Made by a program: the position numbers and the translations under genes. 64,000 nt of DNA, taken from assembly GCA_000388065.2 (NCBI GenBank), contig KB932205.1, one strand, 5' to 3'. Under the pieces are notes generated by a model. That model made no database searches. It worked only from the letters and a program-made list of their open reading frames with translations, and had not been told where the DNA came from. Origin of the DNA: Fonticula alba ATCC 38817 (taxonomy: Eukaryota; Protista; Nucleariida). Below, one piece after another: positions 2,877-34,967 of the stretch (its first letter is position 1; the number at the start of each line of letters is the position of its first letter).

Positions 2877-3217
2877 TGATGACACCTCACCACCCCCGGG
2901 CCGACAAAGGGCGGAGAGGCCGGATGTCAGGGGGGGAGGGAGAGAAGCCCGCGGGCAACGCACAATCTTGTTGCCCACCAAAACCACCGGCGTGGCCACG
3001 GTCTGGTGCTCGTTGACCCGCTCGATGGCCTCCTTCAGGGCCTTGGCCTCATCGAAGGAGGTGGCATCGCAGATGGAGTATACCAAGAGGAACCCCTCGG
3101 CATGGCGGAGCTGGTGGTCCCGCAGCGAGGTGTACTCCTGCTGCCCGGCCGTGTCGGTGATGTTGACCACGCACTCGTAGCCGGATGGGAGCATGACACG
3201 CTTGCGGAAGTTTTCCT
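2063..3217 (-). CDS. Ras-family small GTPase, 5'-partial (3 visible exons: 3217-2964, 2702-2613, 2341-2063)
   Basis: Spliced translation gives EENFRKRVMLPSGYECVVNITDTAGQQEYTSLRDHQLRHAEGFLLVYSI...VVLVGNKI|DLEADRQVSTRDASAYATELGIPFFETSAK|TSHGVEAAFHALITELRK...KLCILV*. G3 (DTAGQ), G4 (NKID), G5 (ETSAK) and a terminal CAAX (CILV) are present; all junctions GT-AG and in phase. The G1/P-loop exon is not visible and probably lies in the 3377-4146 gap. Confidence 0.93.
2363..2470. repeat. Purine-rich imperfect tandem repeat (GGGAGCAGGGAGAA-like) in Ras intron
   Basis: Several imperfect 11-14 nt copies. Confidence 0.85.
2805..2875. repeat. Poly-G tract, 71 nt, in Ras intron
   Basis: Uninterrupted G run. 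Confidence 0.99.
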
Positions 3218-3376
3218 CTGTGCGTGTGTGCGTGTGCGAGTGGATGCATGGCGGCGATGGTAAGCGGCATCATCGAGGCAGGAGCGTGAGACAAGCGACG
3301 AAGGGGGAGAGGTGCGGGAGGTCATGGCTCAAGGGCCGGCAAAGGGAGAGCGGGGGCGAGGACCAAAGGCACAGCG

Positions 3377-4146
3377 NNNNNNNNNNNNNNNNNNNNNNNN
3401 NNNNNNNNNNNNNNNNNNNNNNNNNNNNNNNNNNNNNNNNNNNNNNNNNNNNNNNNNNNNNNNNNNNNNNNNNNNNNNNNNNNNNNNNNNNNNNNNNNNN
3501 NNNNNNNNNNNNNNNNNNNNNNNNNNNNNNNNNNNNNNNNNNNNNNNNNNNNNNNNNNNNNNNNNNNNNNNNNNNNNNNNNNNNNNNNNNNNNNNNNNNN
3601 NNNNNNNNNNNNNNNNNNNNNNNNNNNNNNNNNNNNNNNNNNNNNNNNNNNNNNNNNNNNNNNNNNNNNNNNNNNNNNNNNNNNNNNNNNNNNNNNNNNN
3701 NNNNNNNNNNNNNNNNNNNNNNNNNNNNNNNNNNNNNNNNNNNNNNNNNNNNNNNNNNNNNNNNNNNNNNNNNNNNNNNNNNNNNNNNNNNNNNNNNNNN
3801 NNNNNNNNNNNNNNNNNNNNNNNNNNNNNNNNNNNNNNNNNNNNNNNNNNNNNNNNNNNNNNNNNNNNNNNNNNNNNNNNNNNNNNNNNNNNNNNNNNNN
3901 NNNNNNNNNNNNNNNNNNNNNNNNNNNNNNNNNNNNNNNNNNNNNNNNNNNNNNNNNNNNNNNNNNNNNNNNNNNNNNNNNNNNNNNNNNNNNNNNNNNN
4001 NNNNNNNNNNNNNNNNNNNNNNNNNNNNNNNNNNNNNNNNNNNNNNNNNNNNNNNNNNNNNNNNNNNNNNNNNNNNNNNNNNNNNNNNNNNNNNNNNNNN
4101 NNNNNNNNNNNNNNNNNNNNNNNNNNNNNNNNNNNNNNNNNNNNNG
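3377..4146. other. Assembly gap (770 N)
   Basis: Run of N; probably hides the Ras first coding exon. Confidence 1.
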
Positions 4147-7100: not shown

Positions 7101-7321
7101 CGCCCTTGCCGACCAACTCGACGGACACCGGGGAGGGCGCAACAGGCAAGGGCTTTTCCGCTGCCCAGGGGGGGGGGGGAGGGGTGTCACATCACACACA
7201 GGCCCAGAACAGCGAGATGGATGGGGCGCAGCGGGCGGGGGCAGGGAGGGAAAATGTCTATGCCTAAGCCTAGGGCATTGTGTGTGTGTGTGAGCGCGCG
7301 CGCGCGCGCGGGCCTTTGTGT

Positions 7322-8790
7322 TCAGATATCCGCAGGATGGAGCGTGGTCTGGGTGTGCACCAACGGGCTGGACCGATGCCCGGCCAGCAGGGTCCGTTCT
7401 AGCAGTGACAGATCCTCCACCCGGTAGGGCTTGCGAATAAAGGCATGGAAGAGTCCGGGGAAGCGCTGCTCCAGGGCCTCCGTGCGCTGGTCGAATTTTC
7501 GCTTCCACGAGGGCTCCAGCCGCCGCAGGACGGCCTCTTGATCGTGGCGGTGGTCGCACTTGCAGAAGTCCACCACCGGCGGCTGGGGCTCATCCGAGCG
7601 GGTTGTGGTGGCAGCCCCTCCCTCGTCGGATGCCGGCCCCCGGGCCGATGGGGGAGGCGGCACCCGGCGCCCTGGCAACGGCCCCTCCGGGGGGCGATGG
7701 CACTCCGAGCACACATAATGGTACCCCTGTCGGCTGAGGGCAGTTGTGATGGTCAAGGCGGCGACCACCTTGGCGTTTCGATTCGGCCCGCGGGTGGATC
7801 TATCCACGAGAGTCGGAGGGGCAGGGAAAGGGATGGACGAGGGAAGAGGAGGAGAGGGGAGAGATGAGGCGAGGGGAGGCGAGAAGGAGGAGGCGGGTTA
7901 GCCAGAATCCAAGGATGTATGATGGTCTGCTCTCTCGGTCGACCCGTAGCAGACCCAGCAGGCGCAGGGCAAAAGACGGCCCCGATCCCCCCACCCCGAC
8001 CCACCACCCACAGGCATATCACGTACTGGAGAATGCGCAGCACGGCGCACACGGTCTCCGGGCGGCGGTCACAATCCACGAAGATGATGTTCCACTTGTT
8101 GACGGGCCTCTGATAGTCCAGGCACAGGCATTCATCGCCCAGGGTGTCATTCTCCTCGTCAACCTGCTCCACCTCGCGGATCCAGAACAGCCAATTTTTG
8201 ATGGGCTGCCCGCCGATGAGGTTGGCCAGGTCGTGGCGCCGGCCGATGCCTGGCAGGTGGGGCCCCCACTGCCGGGGCCCGCCCAGGGCCGGGCCCTTCA
8301 TGTTGTGGCGATGGTACAGCAGGCCTATGATGGAGGAGAAGGGGTCGAGTTCCTCCGGCGGCGTGTCATTGCGCCGGCCCAGCCGGAAGCCCGATGTGTC
8401 CTGCAGGTCGTCCAGGCTCAGGGGACACGGCGAGGGAGGCGGCTCCGGGCCCGGGGCCGCATCCGCCAGGGCCACGTTCTGGCCGTGGGGCAGCAAGAAC
8501 ATGGACGAGGTATTGGGCATGATGTCCAGGCGCCGAGACAATTCCAGGCGATCATTGAAGTGGTCTTCCTCGGAGGTGGGCCGGGCAGGGTCCAGTGACC
8601 GGGGGCGCGCGGGGCCGAGCCCGCCGCCCGGCACTTCGACCAAGATCCGGCCGGCGCAAAAGTTGCAGGTCTCAACATGCCGCGAGCTCAGGGACAGATC
8701 CCCCATGCTGGGCAGGCTGACCAGGCTGCCCGAGGCCGATGGCGAGAGGTCCTGCAGGGAGATGTCCATGCTCGGCGACCTGGAGCACCA

Positions 8791-8826
<36 letters not shown>

Positions 8827-11467
8827 GTGGTGGTGGTGGTGGTGATGGTGGTGGTGGTGATGGTGATGGTGGTGGTGATGAGGATGATGATGCGGATGAT
8901 TGTGGTGAAGGTCGCCCGGCCTGGGTGCACTGGAGCTGGAAGTCTGGCCTGGGTGGCCCGGCGGCGGGGAGCTTGGGTAATGGTGAAGGGAATCCGGCTG
9001 CGGCTGCGGCTGCGACTGTTGGTGATGGGAGCTGCTCTCACCACACCCGGCACTGGAGCACGGCGAGGAGAGGGGATGCTCGTGGACGACGCGCGCCGCG
9101 TAGCCGTCGACGATGATCAGCGGCTCCTCGCAGCCAGACCCCGACCCGAGAGTCAGCTCCAGGCTGCCGACCACCGACCGGAGCATGTCCACCCGGTGGA
9201 AGATATAGGTCAGGTGGCACAGCCGCGCCGGAAGGCGCTGATAGCCGCCCGGGGGGTCTGGCGTGGCCGGAGGCCTGGGCCACACCGGGGCGGCCTCCGG
9301 CCGGGGGGACGACCCCCGGGGGGCGGGCCGCGGCAGGCCGGTTGCCGGGCCGAGGGAGATGTCGCCAGCCACATAGGTCGAGCTGACGGCATGCAAGTCC
9401 GACGAGACCGAGGGGTCGACGGCCGCCGGGTCCGGCGCCTCGAAGCCGGGGCCGGGCCCCATGCCGGGCGAGCTCATGTGCCTCGGGCTGGCCAAGGGAA
9501 CCGGCTGCGGGCCGTCCCGCATGGCAGGCAGGCTGCCCTGGGCCTCGGCGGTGTCGCAGCGAATGCCCTTTGCCTCGCCGCAGGACACGGTGCCGATGGC
9601 CATGGTGCCCGGCGCCGTGCCGCCTGCCGGGGCATCACCGGCCATGGCCAGGGCGGCAGGCAGGTGGCCGGGCGGCCGGTGCGGCGACGAGTCCAAGGCG
9701 CCCGGGCGCCGGGGCCTGGCGAGTTCCTGGTCCCCAAGGCAGGCCCCCATGAGCAGGTCCTTCAGGTAGGTGGCATTGTCGGTGACCGTGTCGCAAATGA
9801 GGGCCGTCAGGAGCCGCGGGGCCCGCAGGGCCAGCAGGCGGCGGGCGATTCGCGCCGCGCGGCTGCCCGCCAGCCGGGCCTGCAGCAGGTTGCTGGCCGC
9901 CTCGGCCGCCGTGCGGGGCGACATCTGCGACAGCTGGAAGGGCTGCCCGGCGGCCGGGTCCTCGCCGTCGGAGTCCGGCTCGACGCGGGGCAGGAATTGC
10001 CCGACGGCCGTCCACCCGGTGGCCGCGTCCACCGGGCCGCCTTCCGGGACCGGGTGCATGGGCGGCCCGGTGGGCACGCTGGCCAGGAGCAATGGCCCCG
10101 ACAGGGAATAGAGGAGCCCGCTGCCGGGCCCGCGGATCAGGCCCGGCCCGCCGCCGGACGACGAGGAGGAGGATGCCGTGGAGGAGGCGGACGATGAGCA
10201 GGGCGAGCCGGACCGCGAGGACCCCAGGATGAAGGCGTCCTCCCCGGGTCCGGGCCCGGGGCCGGGGCCGGGGCCGAGGCCGGCCGGGCGGAGGGGCGAC
10301 GTGATGGCGATCGAGGGGCCCGGCTGGCCGCCGGGCATCCGGGCGCCTGGGCCACTGCCCCCGGGCCCGCCCCCGCGCGAGGCGTACTCCGACACGGAGG
10401 AGATGGACCCACGCCGGGGGGCCCGCCAGGCGAAGGGCTGGTGGTAGCCCTGCTGCTGGAGCTGGAGCTGCTGCAGCTGCTGCTGCTGCTGGTGGTGAAG
10501 CTGCATGTATGGGTGGGAGGCCGGGTCGCCGGGGCCCGGGGCCAGCACGGCCGATTGGGACCGGTGGTGTCGCGGCCCGGGCACCGTGGCCAGGAAGGGG
10601 GCATGCTGGGCCGGGCCCGGGGGCGGGGTCCCGGCCCCGTCCGGCCCGTCGGCCATCGGTGGCCCGGCCCCGGGGAAGTCCGACAGGGGGGACGATTCGT
10701 CGGGGCTGCGCCAGGCCCCGGCGGCCGAGCGCCAGCCCTGGGGCGAGTTCAAGGCCGAGGAGGACCCGGTCACCCAGAACTTGGACTGGCCCAGCGGGGT
10801 GCGCGGGGTGCGCGGGGTGCGCGGCGTACGCGGCGTGGTCGTGGTCCGCGGCGGCCCGGGGATGGTGCCGGCGCCGGTGATGCCGCCGGGCCCGATGCCG
10901 GTCGGGCCGGTCCCCTGCAAGTGGAACCGGTGCAGCGAGCCGGAGGAGAAGTTCCGCCGAAGGGCCCCCCCGCCCCCGGCCGAGGGCCCGGGCGCCCCGA
11001 GGGAGCTGGGGCTGATGCCGACGCTGCCGGGCGGCCCGGCCGGGCCGTACTCCCCGGCCGGCAGCAGGGGCAGCAAGTCGTCCGGCCGGTGGTTGGCCCG
11101 GTGGTGGCCCGACCGGGGGGGATACCCGGGCGGCGAGGCGGCCGACATCGAGGCCACCGACGAGGAGGAGGACGACCGCGCGATGCCGGCCGAGTGGGGG
11201 GACGAGGAGCAGGAGGGGGATGGCCGGGGCCCGGCGGCCGCGGCGGCCAGTGCCGGGTCCAGCGTCCGTGCCAGCTGCGCCGCCTCGCCGGAGGAGGTGT
11301 CCGACTCGCCGATGCCAAACATGCGGCCGGGTGCCGGGCCGCCGGGCACCGGGGCCGGCGCCAGCGGGGGCGGATGCCCGCCATACGGCGACGGGCCTTG
11401 CCCCCCGCCGGGGGCCTGGTACCAGAAGCCGGTGTCCAGCGGGTCGTGGCGACTGCCGCCGGCGGGT

Positions 11468-11510
<43 letters not shown>

Positions 11511-14500
11511 GCGTGGTCGGCCGACTGCCAGCCATGTCGGACAGGTGCGCCGAGAAGGAGGACGACCCGCTGGACCGGGCGCTGCACGGGTACTCCGACA
11601 GCGGGGACGAGGGGGGCGCCGAGAGGAAGGGGGCAAATTCGCTGGCGCTCGTGGACCGGCAGATGCCCGTGCGCGGGCCCCGGTGCGTGGCGGTCGGGTG
11701 GCCGGCTGCCGGGTAGGGCCCGGCAAAGGGGTGGTACACGGCCGTGGGCGAGTGCGACCGGTCGGACAGCGAGCCGCTCGGCAGGCCGGCGGCATTCAGA
11801 GCCAGCGGCGACAGGCCCGGGCCGCCGGGGGACAGCATCGGCGGCGAGACATTGCGCCGGATGCCGGGGGTCGGCGGCGGCGGCGGAGCCAGCCCGGTCC
11901 ACGGGCTGTCCAGGCCGCTGGCCGAGGAGCTGGCCGAGGAGGGCGCCTGCGACGGGGGGAAGCCCGACGAGGCATGGGGGTGGAAGTGGGCCTGGCTGCC
12001 GGGGCCGGGACCGGCGGCCGGGGGTCCGCCATAGTGCTGCTGCGTCGGGGGTTCCGCGAGGGGCACCGGCGTGACGATGCCGCTCGGTGGCCCGGCCCCG
12101 GGGGCCAGGTGCGGGTGTTGCAGGAGCAGCGACGGGTTGCCGGTGCTGATGCTGCGCACATGGTGCGGCCCGGGGCCGGGGCCGCCGGAGCCGGGCCCCG
12201 GGCCCGGGCCCAGCGGCGAAAGGATGTGCCCCAGGGCCCCGGGGGCCCCGGGGGACCCGGCGCTGCTCAGGCCGCCCAGGTCGCTGGTGCTCGGGGCGGC
12301 CGCGGTCCCGGGCCCCGGGCGATGCTGGCCGCTGAAGCTGGCTCGCCGGGCCCCGGGGCTGGATGTGCCGGACCCGATGCTGCCCCGGCGCTCGGGGTTG
12401 AAGGGCGAGCTGGTGGCCGGGGCATTGGGGCCGCTGGCGCCGGGCCCGAGCCAGGCGCCCCCGGCCGCGGGGACACTCGTGCTGGCGAAGCCGCCCATCG
12501 GCGAGGAGGAGGAGGTCGGCGAGGAGGAGGTCGAAACCGGGGTCGTCACCAGGGACTTGATGTTGGACAGGCCACTGGGGGAGGAGGTGGACAGGCGCCG
12601 GGCCAGCAGCAGGTTGTCCTCCCGCAGGACGCCATAATTCCGGTACCCGAAGCCGGAGCACTCGCCAAGCATGAAGCCCCCGCCGGAGGAGACCGTCGGG
12701 CAGCTGGTGCTGCCGCACATGGTGCACCGGAGCCCGGCCCCGGTCCCGACCAGGGCCGGCACCATGGACGTCATGGAGGGCGTGGCGCTGACCAGGCCGC
12801 TGCCGGTGGCCGACAGCCCGGACAGGGTGGCCGACGAGGACTCGGACGGGGTGCGCGGGGGGAGCGGCGAGCCGGGGCGCGGGGGCGCCGGCCCGGCCCC
12901 GGCCGCCGGCCCCCCGGCCGCCGTGCCGCCGGAGGTGATGACCCCGGCGGCCAGGTGCGGCCGTGAGGTGGCCAGGGGGCTGGCCACCTGCAGGGGGCTT
13001 CGCCCGGCGCCGGCGCCGGCGCCGGCGCCGGCGCCGGAGGTGGTGCTGGTGCTGGCGCTGGTGCTGGTGCTCGGGGGGTCCGGCGTGGTGGAGGTCCCGC
13101 CCCCGGTGGCGGAGGACGCCCCCCCGGCGGCCGATGGGCGGGAGGGCTGGTCGGCGGCCGGGCCGCTGGACGCCGCATGCGGCGCCCGGTCCTGCGAGGG
13201 CAGGCCGCCCATTGGTCCTGCCGGTGGCCGGGCCGTGGGGGCCGGGCCCGGGGCGGCTGCCTCACCGGCCGGCCGCCGGGCCGGGGGACCTCCCTCGCCG
13301 GCCGGGGCCGAGCTCTCCAGCGGTGTGTTGGGGGTGGAGGGCGGCGGCGGCCGGCGGCCGGGCTCCGCGTCCATGCCGGCCGGCGGCAGGTCCAGCCGCA
13401 CCACCGGCCGGCCGGCATCACTGAAGACCCCGGTCGGGGTCGGGGTCGGGCCCGAGCCGGACAGAGCCCCCGAGTCCGACTGCGACTCGGTGGCCTGGGC
13501 CTCGGCCGAGTAGACGGCCCCGGTGCGCAGCGGGCTGGGGCGCTTGGCCGGCGCCGTGGACAGGGCCGCGGCCTGGGGAGCCAGCCGCCGGCCGCGGCCC
13601 AGGCCACGGGTGCCCGGGTCCGGCGACACGGGCGTCGAGGGCCCGGCGATCGGGCCCGGCACGGCGATCGGGCCCGGCACGGCGGAGGTGCCGGCCGCCA
13701 GGCGCGGGCTGGCGGCCGGGCTGCGCGGCGCGGCCGAGCGCCGGGTCGCGCGGTCGGTGCTCGACCGGCCGGCCGACGCTGCCGCCGCCGCCGGCGAGGG
13801 GGGCGGGGACCCGGTGGCGACGGCGCTGGCCGTGCTGGCGGCCAGCGCCGCCTGGCTGCTGTCGCCCACCTCGCTCTCGGACGAGGAAGCGGGCACCACG
13901 GCCTCGCTAGGGATCGTGGTGAGCGCAGGTCAGTAAGGCACGTTTGCACCGGGGGTGGGGTGGGGTGGGGGGGGGGGGGCGGAGGTGTGGCTTTTTTCCG
14001 CTGTGCTTCTCTGTCTCGCTGCCTCGCACTTGCCTCGCCTTCCCCCGCAGCCGTTTTCGCTCTGTCTCTCTCTGTCTCTCTCTCTCTCTCTCTCACTCGC
14101 TCGCTCGCTCGGGCACCCACCCTCGGGGCCATGCAGCATGCGTGGCCAGTGGCGTACCGGTTCACCTGAAGCAGCAGGGCCTCAGCATGCGGGCTCTTGC
14201 CGGTGGCCAGCGAGGCCCCCCCCCGGTCCCGGTGGTGCCAGGTCGAGTAGCGCCCCGACTGGCCGAAGGCGTATTTGCCGCCGGCCGGGGGGGCAGCCGC
14301 AAGCGAGCCCCCGGGCCCGGAGGTGGCCGACGAGCTGATCGCAGCCGAGGACGTGGCGGTGGAGGCCGACCCGGCGGAGCCAGTGCCCCCGGTGGGCACC
14401 CCGGCCTCGGCCGCCAGGTCCGCCAGGACCGACGCCGGCTCCGACCGCTCGTGCGAGGTGGCCCGGCTGGAGGGCAGTCGCACCGTGGCAATGAGGTTGG

Positions 14501-17500
14501 CCGACGAGGCGGCCGACGTCAGCAGCACTGCCCCCGAGTCCATGGAGATGGCCGAAAGCCCGGACGCGGCCAGGGACTCCGGGTAATCCTCCAAGGTCCG
14601 GAGGAGCGACAGGTCCGACCGCGAGGCCGACATGACGGTGCGCTTGCCGCCGAAGGTTTGCGAGTGGTAGTTGCCGATCTTGCCGGACCGGCTGGCCGAG
14701 CTTGCCTGGCCGTTGGTCGTATCGGTGGAGGACTGGCCGCTGTAGCCGACATCACGCGAGGAGGACCCGCCGAGCAGGCTGGACAGCGACCGGCCGCCGG
14801 ACAGGGCCTGCCGCGCGGCCGCCGGGCTGCCCGGCGCCGGCGACGGGGCCGGCGACGAGGACAGGCTCCCGGCCGGGGTGATGCCGGCCCCGGGGCGGTC
14901 GTCGGCCGCGGCCAGCCGGCGCATGTATTGCTGGGCCTGGATTCGCAGGACCGAGGCGCTGCGGTCGGCCGGCGGCGAGGCCGCCCGGCCCCGCTGCCAG
15001 GGATACAACTTGACGGCGGCCGCCGGGCTGGCCCCCGGCCGCGAGGGCGGCGTGCCCACCGGCGAAAGTGGGGCCTGGGCCGCGGGGCGCGCCCGGGCCG
15101 GGGTCACGACCACCGTCGGCGGCTCGGCCACCCGGAGGGCCTCCATCGTGGCCGGCCGCGAGCTGTGGATGGTTGCATGGCCGGCGGCCGGGGGCGGGGC
15201 CGCCAGGGGTGGCGGCGGCCTCGGCAGGACGCCGGGGCCGTGCTCCCGGCCGGGGGGGCCCCCGGCGGCCGGCCGCCCGGCCGCCCGCGCGCTGGCCTCT
15301 TCCTGGCCGGCCTGTGGCCAGGGTGCTGGCAGCGGCGGCGGCGGCGGCGGCCGGGTGAGGGTCTCCTCCGAGACGTCGGCCTCGGCGCCGGAGTCGATTG
15401 CGCGCGAGGACGAGCGCGACAGGCCCGCCCGCCGGGCCTCCGCCTCCTCCTCGGGCGATGATGAGGCGGCCGACCCGCGCGAGGGCTGGCCCGCACGCGG
15501 TGCCACCAGCGCCAACGGCGGCGGCGGCGGCGGCGGCGGCCCCTGGGGCACCTGCGGCGGCTGTGGCAGCGGCGGCGGCGGCAGCGGCGGCAGCGGCAGC
15601 GGCGACGGCCCCAGGACCTTGCTCGATGACAGGTAGCCCGCCGGCCCGGGGGCCGGGTGGAGTTGATAGTGCAGCAGCAGCGGGTCCCCATCGGACAGCG
15701 AGGAGGACGAGGCCGACAGCCGGGGCCGGCGTGGCTGCTCCGAATTCTCCGACGATGCCACATCCCCGGTGGCCAGGCTGTCGGCCAGCAGCTCATTGGA
15801 GGAGGTGGTCAGGGCGAGCGGCGGCGGCAGTGGCGGCAGTGGCGGCGGCGGCGGCGGCGAGGGCGACGCCGAGGGCGGCATGGCCGACGCCGGGCCCGGG
15901 TCCTCGGGCGCCGGGTCCCCGGGCGCCGGGTGCTCGGGCGCCGGGTCCCCGGGCGCCGGGTCCGGGCCCGCCACCAGCGGGGCCGGCAGGGGCACCGAAG
16001 CACTGGCGCCGGAGGGCGTGCCGATAGACATGCTGTCGGTGATGGTGACACTGGTGTCGGTGATGGTGACACTGGTGTTGGTGTTGGTGGTGATGGTGGC
16101 CGCGACCGAGGTGGCCGCCGTGAGGTCCGTGTCATCGCCATCGATGTCGGTCATGGGGCCGACGCCGCGCTGGTCGAAGTACGACACATCGGCGTCGTCC
16201 TGCAGGCGCGGGATGAAGAAGGCCTCGGCGTGGGCCAAGTTCCGCCAGTTGATCTGCTCCGCCTCCGGGGGCTCCTCCCAGATGTACACCGGCTGCGGCA
16301 GGCCCCGGGGGTTGCCGTAGGTCCGCTGGCGCCGGGGGATGGACCCGGCGCGCGGGGACACCGGCGAGCTGCCGGCTGCCGAGCCGGGCCCCGCGCCCGG
16401 CCCCCCGGGCAGGTCGCCGGCGGCCATCGGCTGCCCGGGCCCGCGCCCGGGCGACACCGGCGGCGAGGGGGAGTTGCCGGATCCGCCCTGCGCCCGGGGG
16501 GTCTGGTCCAGCAGCGGGCTGTTGTCCGGGCCCAGCATGAGCCCGGGCCAGGGGCCGAAGTACCGGTGGGCCTTGACGGCCTGCGAGCCGCCGGTCACAA
16601 AGGACCCGAGCCGGCGCTCCGGGTCCGCATTCAGCAGGTGGTTGATGATGTTGTAGGAGTGCCAGGAAATCGGGATGTACGTGGCCTCCTCCGACGGCAT
16701 GGGCCCCCCGTCGGAGCTGCTGGAGCCGCCCATCGACGCGCGGCCGATGTCCAGGCGGAGGTCGGCCCTCGGGGAGGGGGTCCCGCCGGGGGCGCTGGCC
16801 GGGGTGGTGGCCGGGCTGTCGGCCCCGCTGGCGCCGGCGGACGGTGTCTGCGGGTGCTGCGGATGCTCGGCATTGCCCAGGCGGCCACGGCCGCCGACCA
16901 TGCCATCCGACAGCTGCAAGTTGGAGGGGTCGCTGTAGAAGGCCGACAGAGATGGCCCGGCCGTGCGGCCGGCCCCGCTGTGCAGGTCCAAGTCCCCGTG
17001 GGAGGAGGCCCCGCCATGGAGAACGCCCAGGCGCCGGAGGGCCACCATTCGCCGGCGGAGGTCCTCCTCGCCGCCGGGGCTGGCGCCGGCCATGCTGCTG
17101 CTCGGGCCCAGCAGCGGCGAGTGCGAGGCCGAGAGGGAGGTCGACCCGGACACCGGCGAGGGCGATGCCCGGGCCATGGGCGGCAGGGGCGGCTGGGGCT
17201 GCAGGAAGATCGGCCTCGCCAGGAGCTCCGGCTCGCCGCCAGGCCCGCCGGGCCCGCCGAGGTCCGGCGAATTCCGCAGCAGCCGATCGCGCTCCTCGGC
17301 GTGATGCCGCTCCCAGGCCAGCAGCTCCCCCGGGCCGCGGACATTCGACCAAAAGCCCGACAGGGGCCTGGAGTCGTTGCTGTTCCGGTCCCAGCGCTGC
17401 TTCTTCACCCGGCGCAGGGTCCCGGACAGGTAGTGGAAGCGCCCGCGCTGCTCGGTGGCCAGGCGCCGGCTGGGGAAGGTCCCATGGTCGCCGGCGGGCG

Positions 17501-20500
17501 AGTCATCGCTCGGCCCGGCGACGGCGGCCGCCGCCTCGGCCCGGGCCGCGGCCGCCATCCGGTGCAGGCGCTCCTGCGACCAGGAGGTGGCCAGCTGCTC
17601 CTCCAAATCGCGGCGCAGCCCGGCCGCCGGGGTCAGCGCCTCCGGCGAGGCCGGCGCCGACAAGTTGGCAATGGCCTGCCCCCCGGCTTCGGCCATGTCG
17701 GTGGGCTCGGCGTACAGGGTCCGGTCGGAGTCGTCCGAGGACACGGCCCCGGTGGTGGTGGTGGTGGTGGTGGTGGTGGTGGTGGTGGTGGAGCCCCGAC
17801 TTGGGCTGGCATCCGATGTCGACCCGGCGTCCACATCCTCCAGGTCGCTGGCGAACTCCACCGACCAGGAGATGTCCCGCAGGACGATGCGGCCGAAAAT
17901 CTGCTCGCGCGTCGGCGCGTGGAAGGGCGGCACGCCATACAGGAACTCGTAGAGAATGACGCCGAGGGCCCACTGGCGGGCAGGCAGGGCCGGGCGAGCG
18001 GGCAACGCCGAACGAGCGGGCGGGCGTGAGAAGAGGCAGGAGGATCAGCGGGGCGGGNNNNNNNNNNNNNNNNNNNNNNNNNNNNNNNNNNNNNNNNNNN
18101 NNNNNNNNNNNNNNNNNNNNNNNNNNNNNNNNNNNNNNNNNNNNNNNNNNNNNNNNNNNNNNNNNNNNNNNNNNNNNNNNNNNNNNNNNNNNNNNNNNNN
18201 NNNNNNNNNNNNNNNNNNNNGGGGGGCGGGGACAGAGGGGCTGCCAGCCCGGCGCCAGGGGTCCAGGCGAGCACCGCCAGGTGCCCGGGAGGAGGCAAGC
18301 GTACCCAGTCGACTTCCGGGCCGCCGGCATCGCCGCCGATCACCTCCGGGGCCATGTAGTCCGGCGTGCCGACGGCCGCGCGCTCCTGGCGGTAGGGCGG
18401 TAAGGGGTGCTGGGCTCCGGCCGACCCGGCGAAGGGGTCGTCAAAGGGCCCGCGGCCCGAGTCCCCGGCCGCGGCATTCCCGATGCCGGTGCCGTCACTG
18501 CCGTAGGCCGACCCCCCGGCGGACCGGGGGAAGAGGAAGTCTTCGGCCGTGGCGCCGATGCGGGCCAGGCCGAAATCCGCCACCTTGATGCGGCCGGTCT
18601 GCGCGCAGAGCAGCAAATTGTCCGGCTTCAGGTCCCGGTGGGCGATGCCGCGCTCGTGCAAGTGCGCCAGGGCCGCGGCCGTCTGTGCGATGTACAGCCG
18701 GGCCCACAGCTCATCGAGGCTGCCGATGTTCTGGATGTGTTTTCGCCGGGGGGCATCATGGGGACGGGAAGGGGGCGGGCAGGCGGCCGGGCGGCCGGGC
18801 CGGGCCGCGCACGGCGGGCCGGCAGGGGCAGACGCAGGACCGGGTAAGAGGGCGAAGAGGGGGGACAGCAGGCGCGGGGCGGCGCGTGACCCGGCCTGGC
18901 CCGGCCAGAGGCCGGACCACCGAGCAGGCACGGCCGGCACACGCAAGGGGCAAGTGGGACCAGCGGGGGGCGGGGGGTGGCGGGGGGGGGGGGGGGGGCC
19001 CGCCGGGCGGGCCCCACCGCGCCCGCTCTCCGGGGGGGTCCGCGCTGTGCGGGCGCCCAGCCGGGGGGGGGGGGGGGGGGGGTCCCCAGCCAGCACATAC
19101 CTTTAGCAGTGACGCGCAATCGCCACCGGCCACATACTCCATCACAAGGCAGAGGCTGCGCTCGGTTTCGAAGGCGTAATACATGCGCACCAGGAATGGG
19201 CACCCGATGCCGGCCTCGATCATGACCTCGCGCTCGATGCGAGCCCCGGCCGCGGCGATGGCCGACTTGTCTTCCTGGCCGGCGCCGGCCGGTCCGTCGC
19301 CGCCGGCGCCGCCGCCAGGGCCCCCGCCAGCCGCGGCGGCCGCTGCCGCCGCCGCGGCCGCGGCCGCGGCCGCCGCCGAGGCGTCCGTCGGAACCATCCG
19401 CTTGGGGACGGCCTTCACCGCGAAGAGGGCCCCGGTGCGGCGTTGCCGGGCCAGGACCACGCGGCCGAAGGCCCCCCGCGAAATGGGCTTAATCACCTGG
19501 AAGTCATTGACCGACACGCTGGCACTCGGCGGGGCCAGGAGCTTGCCGGAGTCGCCGACGTGCGGCAGGGGAATGCCGGCCCCCGGCAGGAGGGCCTGGC
19601 GGAGCTCGCTCAGGAAGTTGTTCTCCATGCTGACGCCGGCCATGTGGCGGAAGATCCCCCGGATGGAGGCCAGCGAGTGGCCCTCCAGGCGCAGGAGGGC
19701 CGGCGTCAGGAGCTTGCCCGAGGGCGAGCGCGGCAACTCGACGATGCTCGGGGCAACGCGCGCATGGGGGTCCGGCGGGGGCAGGGAGATGGGCGCGGCA
19801 CCGGGCTGCGCATCGGCCCGGCCCCCGGCCAGGGCCCCGACCGGCATCATGACCGACGACCAGGACCGCTGCAATGGCAGCCGCGCCTCGGTGGACACGG
19901 CGTCGCCAAATTGCAGCATTGTTTCCTGCAGGCCGAAGGCCACTTGCGAGAGGCCGGGCATGCGCAGGCCCGGCCTGCCGGGCCCGGTCCCGGTGGCCAT
20001 CCCCCCCCCGGGGCCGCGCTGGACATACGCCAGCTCCGGCATGCCCACCATGAGGGCCGCCTCGGTCAGCAGGAAGTCCCCGATCAGGTAGGCCTGGGCC
20101 AGGGCCGACCGGGCGAAGCGCCGCAGGGCCGGCAGATTCCGCGGGATGTGCGGCACGATGTCGGCCGCGTGCAGGGCCGCCACCCCGGCCGCCGCGTCGT
20201 CCGAATTGATGGCCCCCCGGTGGAGCGAGCCAAAGTCGAAGGCCGTCATCTCGGCAAAGTCCTCCGGCGCATTGGGCCCCTCCATGGTGGCGTTCCCATG
20301 CGCCAGCGGGTCCAATGTCAGCAGGGTCACATGCGTGCCCTGGGAGAGCAGGGCCCGGAAGCACTCGGCGCATTGGCAGGACTCCGGATCGGAAAGGGGC
20401 TCCTGCAGGTGCCCCGGCACGAAGGCCTGGTGCCGCAGGAGGACCTGCATCTCGCTGCCGTGGATGAAGAGCTTCGGGTTGGCCTCGATGAGATTCCAAT

Positions 20501-29251: not shown

Positions 29252-29443
29252 NNNNNNNNNNNNNNNNNNNNNNNNNNNNNNNNNNNNNNNNNNNNNNNNN
29301 NNNNNNNNNNNNNNNNNNNNNNNNNNNNNNNNNNNNNNNNNNNNNNNNNNNNNNNNNNNNNNNNNNNNNNNNNNNNNNNNNNNNNNNNNNNNNNNNNNNN
29401 NNNNNNNNNNNNNNNNNNNNNNNNNNNNNNNNNNNNNNNNNNN
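29252..29443. other. Assembly gap (192 N) at the kinase 5' end
   Basis: Run of N. Confidence 1.
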
Positions 29444-34900: not shown

Positions 34901-34967
34901 NNNNNNNNNNNNNNNNNNNNNNNNNNNNNNNNNNNNNNNNNNNNNNNNNNNNNNNNNNNNNNNNNNN
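34901..34967. other. Assembly gap (67 N)
   Basis: Run of N. Confidence 1.

Follow-up and report, generated by a model that had tools for sequence, protein, structure and literature searches.

Fungal Rim15 kinases end in a receiver-type domain whose phosphoacceptor site differs from lineage to lineage. Most Ascomycota have Glu at this site and Saccharomyces cerevisiae and Candida albicans have Ala or Gly, while Basidiomycota and Mucoromycota have Asp, together with Asn at position +1 relative to the acidic pair (DD) that follows strand beta1 (PMC8510515). Outside the Ascomycota the domain is mostly a true receiver, a pseudo-receiver being defined so as to cover domains in which the second position of the DD pair is non-acidic (PMC12632262). 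About 90% of receivers also have Pro four residues and Gly eight residues after the phosphoacceptor (D+4 and D+8, in the beta3-alpha3 turn), and fungal receivers often carry disordered loop inserts of tens of residues (PMC8510515). Here we analyze a stretch of 64,000 nucleotides (hereafter the window) from contig KB932205.1, assembly GCA_000388065.2, of Fonticula alba ATCC 38817, a non-fungal relative of fungi; its minus strand probably carries the 3' end of one gene, some 5,300 codons long, for an AGC kinase of the Rim15/Greatwall family, with a receiver in its last two exons. What is new is the lineage and the degree of divergence and insertion, since retention of the Asp outside the Ascomycota was already known; in the collection of papers searched, none names Rim15 together with Fonticula.

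The predicted protein resembles the non-Ascomycota Rim15 proteins in placing, after an AGC kinase, a C-terminal receiver that keeps Asp, Thr and Lys-Pro, in its 'ST..N.N..hhhA' loop between alpha3 and beta4, and in its great length (2,600-4,000 residues in some fungi). The fungal receivers are, however, compact (about 115 residues), are matched by the Pfam profile Response_reg at an E-value of 1e-15, and have DD plus Asn as well as the Pro at D+4 and the Gly at D+8; the Geranomyces proteins from chytrids (P0027-P0029), with DD, D, T and K in place, match at this E-value. The Fonticula copy, in contrast, has an Asp-Thr pair in its best register, lacks both turn residues, is interrupted twice (by about 460-545 and by about 85 residues) and goes undetected by Pfam on single exons. 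With the Ascomycota proteins (Capronia and other Pezizomycotina, P0002-P0017; S. cerevisiae) it shares the architecture, the IIF motif of beta3 and the Lys-Pro blocks, whereas these proteins have Glu, Ala or Gly where Fonticula has Asp, and His at DD+1 (PMC8510515). Pro/Ser-rich loop inserts are also known from Ssk1 and from hybrid kinases of group VII, VIII, XI or XV, where they lie between alpha2 and beta3 and between alpha3 and beta4, opposite the active site, and have been proposed to serve in docking (PMC8510515). Those of Ssk1 measure 38 +/- 16 residues; the main Fonticula insert is ten times longer, and the second one follows beta4, near the active site.

The one-gene model is drawn from the coding signal and from splice signals (Table 1). 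GC content in the window is very high (65-82% in 1-kb segments). On the minus strand, each exon from about 24300 down to 7325 keeps to a single frame in which GC content at third codon positions (GC3) is 0.8-0.98. This signal is interrupted by four introns, all with GTAYGY donors and all joining their exons in phase, and it is because GC3 reaches at least 0.8 in each exon over 24300-7325 and because of these four introns that we assign all exons to one gene, with a predicted product of about 5,300 residues. Intron C links the kinase-bearing exon, in frame, to an exon of 1,960 codons (exon 4) that ends in beta3-alpha3. The motifs NIIFVD and VVAALT lie in different frames and would be joined by intron D, in which the donor at 8026 is followed by a long pyrimidine tract and a first AG at 7801-7800, so that the junction reads RILQ. 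Use of an alternative AG at 7770-7769 would terminate the protein four codons on, and the GC3 of exon 5 stays coding-type in the receiver frame.

Judged by its sequence, the kinase is a member of the Rim15/Greatwall family, an assignment made with Pfam, a word search and local BLAST against a comparison set of 30 proteins. Pfam detects Pkinase pieces on three exons. A word search with the N-lobe retrieves fungal Rim15-type PAS+kinase+REC (receiver) proteins, plant IREH and animal MAST, and the best matches with full coverage are fungal kinase+REC proteins, IREH and MAST; one piece of the C-lobe shares 70-72% identity, over 36-37 residues, with the kinase+REC proteins of the chytrid Geranomyces. 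The T-loop insert between DFGLA and GTPDYMAPE, at about 60 residues, is shorter than that of ascomycete Rim15. The C-lobe, in contrast to that of its relatives, is split inside one exon, with about 400 residues between its first and second pieces and about 96 from there to the AGC tail, where relatives have 4-6; these inserts (within 17972-16164, minus strand) consist of Thr-rich and other low-complexity sequence. Greatwall/MASTL kinase domains are themselves split by a long non-conserved middle region, and big inserts are tolerated in the family, but the largest kinase insert of Fonticula lies later, in the C-lobe and not in the T-loop. Animal Greatwall is not known to have a receiver domain. 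The N-terminal PAS domain or zinc finger of ascomycete Rim15 was not found in the Fonticula protein, a Pfam scan of the 1,845-residue upstream open reading frame (ORF) giving no PAS domain; PAS may not define the wider family, since the chytrid kinase+REC proteins also have no Pfam PAS match. Among the proteins compared, a 991-residue hypothetical protein labelled Cichorium endivia (P0026) has a C-lobe 60% identical to that of Fonticula and a poly-Thr tail, and looks like a non-plant contaminant in the C. endivia assembly.

We take the beta3-alpha3-beta4 core to be, very probably, homologous to the receivers of Rim15 because a Rim15-type kinase carries it at its C-terminus and because of a block test. 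In this test 41 positions spanning the splice junction (24 residues from the end of exon 4 and 17 from the start of exon 5, the split codon being skipped) were aligned without gaps to the corresponding segments of 14 Rim15 receivers (10 ascomycete, 3 chytrid and 1 basidiomycete-like). The block scored 31-39 BLOSUM units with the four non-ascomycete and two of the ascomycete proteins, 21-25 with seven further ascomycetes and 17 with one. Across the window, the 127,750 contiguous positions in six frames reached at most 16-22, and for 13 of the 14 proteins the block exceeded all of them. For the best six, z was 5.6-5.9; with proteins of three fungal lineages the lead over the window maximum was 10-22 BLOSUM units. 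Identity within the block is 27%, with 44-49% positives, and the block contains the Rim15-specific 'ST..N.N' loop that is also present in the sequences of Text S2 of PMC8510515. The test presupposes the predicted junction at intron D; with the junction given by splice signals and GC3, its significance is at the level of about 1e-3, or better. In combination with introns that join in phase and with the continuity of GC3, the block test places this receiver-like region, within the predicted gene model, at the C-terminus of the same polypeptide as the kinase. This agrees with a first, sequence-only reading of the locus, which had proposed a Rim15-type receiver, recognised by four motifs, in a Greatwall-type kinase; all four motifs (TALICD 9807-9790, NIIFVD 8091-8074, VVAALT 7768-7751 and FIRKP 7441-7427, minus strand) are where that reading placed them.

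A number of results nevertheless weigh against a receiver at this place. If every GT-AG pair in the window is admitted as a candidate junction, the significance of the block falls to about 0.1. Searches of single exons came back empty: Pfam gave zero Response_reg matches at E-values up to 10, hhalign found nothing significant against an alignment of ascomycete Rim15 receivers, and phmmer against the PDB found no receiver. Rim15-REC profiles, when scanned across the window in six-frame tiles, did not single out the candidate pieces; each fragment alone failed to reach significance against shuffled queries, and chain-of-ranks tests with loose spacing either had no power or were not significant. 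Nor did a word search and an exhaustive search of representatives return a self match or relatives for the protein, and the stretch 8029-8700 had zero relatives among 1.84 billion representatives. AlphaFold2 (AF2) run in single-sequence mode on the unspliced stretch 9870-8029 reached a predicted local distance difference test score (pLDDT) of 35, and three RNA runs labelled 'organism B' contributed zero reads to the region. Taken at face value, the empty searches with Pfam, HH-suite and the PDB, and the random tiles that score as high as the candidate pieces, would suit an explanation in which there is no receiver at all and the four motifs arose by chance in a long low-complexity protein. We regard this as highly unlikely, however, given that the junction-spanning block exceeds every position in the window by 10-22 BLOSUM units in three fungal lineages, that in this Rim15-type kinase it sits C-terminally, in the position that the receiver occupies in the family, and that it shares the Rim15-specific loop. 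The expectation of the sequence-only reading that domain scanners would miss this receiver was thus borne out, at least for Response_reg on single exons. A co-linear set of matches at 2400-1700 that emerged from the tile scan was not confirmed by Pfam, and an ESM-Atlas feature search with exon 5 returned no usable match.

As for the N-terminal half of the domain, we lean slightly toward its being present. The segment 9822-9736 is the top beta1-alpha1 match within the final 724 residues of exon 4, with P of 0.09 at best over about 3,300 post-kinase positions in the coding frame. The same segment can be read in a rival register, as the end of alpha1 plus beta2; here an ascomycete 13-mer ranks first, with P of 0.004-0.03 against ascomycete Rim15 (full range given, 0.004-0.55) and no match with the chytrid or basidiomycete-like equivalents, and it is this register that hhalign chooses. 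For the possible beta2/alpha2 remnant at 9590-9478, a 16-mer of P0030 ranks 1 of 127,000 and 1 of 3,343 (P = 0.003), the match being weak with other proteins. The best matches to beta1-alpha1, alpha1/beta2 and beta2/alpha2 fall within 115 residues of one another, in the right order and upstream of beta3. As a candidate for beta2/alpha2, the stretch directly before beta3 gained no support. Inside the large insert, a stretch that is not of low complexity (9222-9070, minus strand) shows beta-alpha-like hydrophobic patterns and is a weaker alternative candidate for the N-terminal elements; adjoining it, AF2 placed two short strands at 9120-9091, at low confidence.

These observations bear on a second explanation, that the domain is a decayed remnant of which only the half from beta3 to alpha5 survives, the upstream beta1-alpha1 match being due to chance and the receiver fold being lost. 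With the search space taken into account, the N-terminal piece falls short of significance, and it suits two registers equally well; beta2 and alpha2 are barely recognisable, alpha2 would be proline-rich, and no generic receiver profile matches any exon, all of which such decay would readily accommodate. On the other hand, it would leave it to coincidence that the best N-terminal matches among about 3,300 positions cluster as described, and the persistence of Asp, Thr and Lys-Pro would be unexpected without constraint; moreover, this protein's kinase domain is also split and yet clearly homologous. We consider loss of the fold rather unlikely, and favor a model in which the protein ends, as in fungal Rim15, in a receiver-type domain that has drifted so strongly that only short blocks can still be aligned. 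Long low-complexity sequences would occupy its loops, the main one (about 460-545 residues) ahead of beta3 and a second one (about 85 residues) from beta4 to alpha4. In this model the segment 9822-9736 would supply beta1-alpha1, a whole (beta/alpha)5 fold would form around disordered loops, and the domain would serve the kinase in regulation or docking.

The main insert spans the gap from 9736 to 8100, about 545 residues, a figure that drops to about 460 when the remnant at 9590-9478 is assigned to the domain. Its GC3 in the frame of the ORF is 0.78-0.96, apart from 0.72 in the segment with the poly-His/poly-Gln tract (about 8901-8782), where the lower value stems from the CAC/CAG codons. This in-frame signal persists through the insert and collapses in the intron that follows; going by GC3, the roughly 545 residues are coding and would be translated. 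An insertion of about 520 residues splitting the receiver, as the sequence-only reading had it, stands as far as the length and the coding nature of the gap are concerned, while the identity of the piece upstream of it is marginal (the P of 0.09 given above). Big inserts inside folded domains also occur elsewhere in this protein, as the kinase C-lobe split by some 400 residues demonstrates. Part of the insert (8262-8413) is covered by a single 152-base contig from a small 2012 run of uncertain type, in the mapping of which the repeats at 7250-7321 and 8782-8901 were skipped.

The second insert contains the motifs CxxCH (7711-7697) and CxCxH (7564-7550), about 45 residues apart, and could form a small zinc-binding element; it also has a weak similarity in the PDB to the SP-RING of NSE2 (E 0.15). 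An intron within exon 5 that would shorten the distance from beta4 to beta5 was considered and rejected, as there is no GTAYGY donor and GC3 remains coding-like.

Turning to the active site, the Asp at 8076-8074 falls on the phosphoacceptor column, equivalent to D57 of CheY, in both gapless and hidden Markov model (HMM) alignments with the 14 Rim15 receivers, as had been claimed; this column holds Asp in the chytrid and basidiomycete-like proteins and Glu in the ascomycete ones. The Lys at 7432-7430 and the Pro at 7429-7427 are put on the K and K+1 columns by hhalign and HMM alike, and the beta5 piece around them ranks 1 of 127,822 against P0012, an ascomycete protein, and 45-1,642 against others. 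The Thr closes the hydrophobic beta4 strand, one residue later than in fungal Rim15 in the gapless register. The initial claim that the full canonical set of residues is present thus stood for the Asp, the Lys-Pro and, with a one-residue shift, the Thr, but not for the rest. In the best gapless register the acidic pair after beta1 is Asp-Thr (Asp 9792-9790, Thr 9789-9787), with a second Asp three residues later that makes a loop insertion possible; and the phosphoacceptor Asp is followed by C-D-R-R-P-E-T-V, which puts Pro at D+5 instead of D+4 and Val in place of Gly at D+8. With Thr as the second, metal-binding acid in the best alignment, the domain would count as a pseudo-receiver under the definition of PMC12632262. 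Because this acid, the Pro at D+4 and the Gly at D+8 are all missing, we think the domain less likely to be an efficient phosphoacceptor, despite its Asp, than a receiver of an atypical kind or a pseudo-receiver.

The competing explanation is that of a fully competent receiver, in which a hybrid histidine kinase and a histidine-containing phosphotransfer (HPt) relay would phosphorylate the Asp, the fold would assemble around the giant insert, and the phosphorylated domain would directly control the Rim15-type kinase. Such competence would be in keeping with the retention of Asp, Thr and Lys-Pro, and with the true receivers that Rim15 proteins of non-ascomycete fungi have (PMC8510515, PMC12632262; the chytrid proteins). 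It would, however, have to make do with a Thr for the second DD acid, which is a direct metal ligand, and without the two turn residues, and it would have to tolerate an insert of about 85 residues adjoining the active-site loop after beta4; nor are there biochemical data for any Rim15 receiver (PMC8510515). In our estimate a competent receiver is unlikely here, and wiring of the Fonticula receiver into a phosphorelay is possible but likewise improbable. The claim in its entirety, namely that in this non-fungal relative of the Fungi a His-Asp phosphorelay is coupled directly to a Greatwall/Rim15 kinase through a working phosphoacceptor receiver, itself folded around more than 450 residues of disordered insert, is decidedly unlikely.

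Table 1. Predicted features of the Rim15-type kinase gene and its receiver-like region, in the order of the coding strand (positions in the window).
Feature	Position	Strand	Basis
Kinase N-lobe (Gly-loop ... CASLLK) with poly-Ala/Gly insert, end of long 5' exon (ORF to 24293)	19101..19511	-	Pfam Pkinase, word search, local BLAST
Intron A (GTATGT ... CAG)	18731..19100	-	Sequence and frame change
Kinase catalytic exon: HRDLKPDN 18640-18617, DFG(LA) 18577-18563, GTPDYMAPE 18370-18344	18305..18730	-	Pfam Pkinase, E 3e-21
Intron B (GTACGC ... CAG), contains assembly gap 18058-18220	17973..18304	-	Splice signals, phase
Kinase C-lobe piece 1 (PPFHA)	17865..17972	-	70% identity to chytrid Rim15-like kinases
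Kinase C-lobe piece 2, subdomains X-XI	16557..16673	-	Local BLAST, GC3 continuity
AGC-type C-terminal tail piece (INW..L....FIP...D.SYFD)	16164..16268	-	Local BLAST alignments
Intron C (GTACGC ... CAG)	13907..14157	-	GC3 collapse and only stop-free in-phase GTAYGY/AG pairing
Best beta1-alpha1 candidate	9736..9822	-	Rank 1-3 of 127,828 against chytrid beta1-alpha1; 9-61 against most ascomycetes
Possible beta2/alpha2 remnant (IRCDTAEA), proline-rich	9478..9590	-	P0030 16-mer match
Large insert, in frame	8101..9477	-	GC3 0.78-0.96, search for relatives of 8029-8700, AF2
Receiver beta3-alpha3, Asp 8076-8074	8027..8100	-	Gapless block test; top exon-4 match for 14/14 Rim15 proteins; HMM alignment
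Intron D (GTACGT ... pyrimidine tract ... TAG), phase 2, split codon Gln	7800..8026	-	Splice signals, GC3 collapse, junction-spanning block alignment
Alpha3-beta4 loop and beta4, Thr 7753-7751	7748..7799	-	Rank 1-27 of 127,894; block test
Insert of about 85 residues, beta4 to alpha4	7487..7747	-	Same frame, no stop, GC3 about 0.8
End of alpha4, beta5, alpha5, with Lys-Pro	7376..7486	-	hhalign and HMM on Lys-Pro columns
Stop codon TGA	7322..7324	-	ORF end

Outside the region discussed so far, coding-type GC3 is also seen on the minus strand upstream of the long ORF, at 28800-27100 and 25800-24700; these stretches have no Pfam matches and may be extra 5' exons of the kinase gene or belong to a neighbouring gene. 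Directly past the stop codon, in the presumed 3' untranslated region, lies a (GT)n/(GC)n microsatellite (7278-7311). Assembly gaps, visible as runs of N, occupy 3377-4145, 18058-18220, 29252-29443 and 34901-34967, the first of which accounts for an apparent dip in GC content at 3001-4000.

The sequence-only reading had regarded the phosphoacceptor Asp as exceptional, starting from the premise that it is generally absent from fungal Rim15 receivers. That premise applies to the Ascomycota only, as is evident from PMC8510515, PMC12632262 and the Geranomyces proteins; since the Rim15 receivers of other fungi keep the Asp, its presence in an outgroup of the fungi is the expected ancestral state and comes as no surprise. 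It would accord with the published interpretation of the Ascomycota pseudo-receivers, those with Glu, Ala or Gly, as derived. The Fonticula copy, with its incomplete metal site, would be a poor first model for the role of the Rim15 receiver, and what it offers is a modest evolutionary data point that opens no long-standing question. Should a working receiver nonetheless prove to be true, the coupling of kinase and phosphorelay would predate the Fungi, and a CheY-like fold would tolerate an insert four times its own size. Together with the split kinase, the domain makes a clear case of low-complexity inserts inflating folded domains in a GC-rich genome, where standard annotation under-reports such domains. 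Finally, if the gene model holds, the presence of this gene in the Fonticula lineage would mean that the fusion of a Rim15-type kinase to an Asp-bearing receiver is older than the Fungi.

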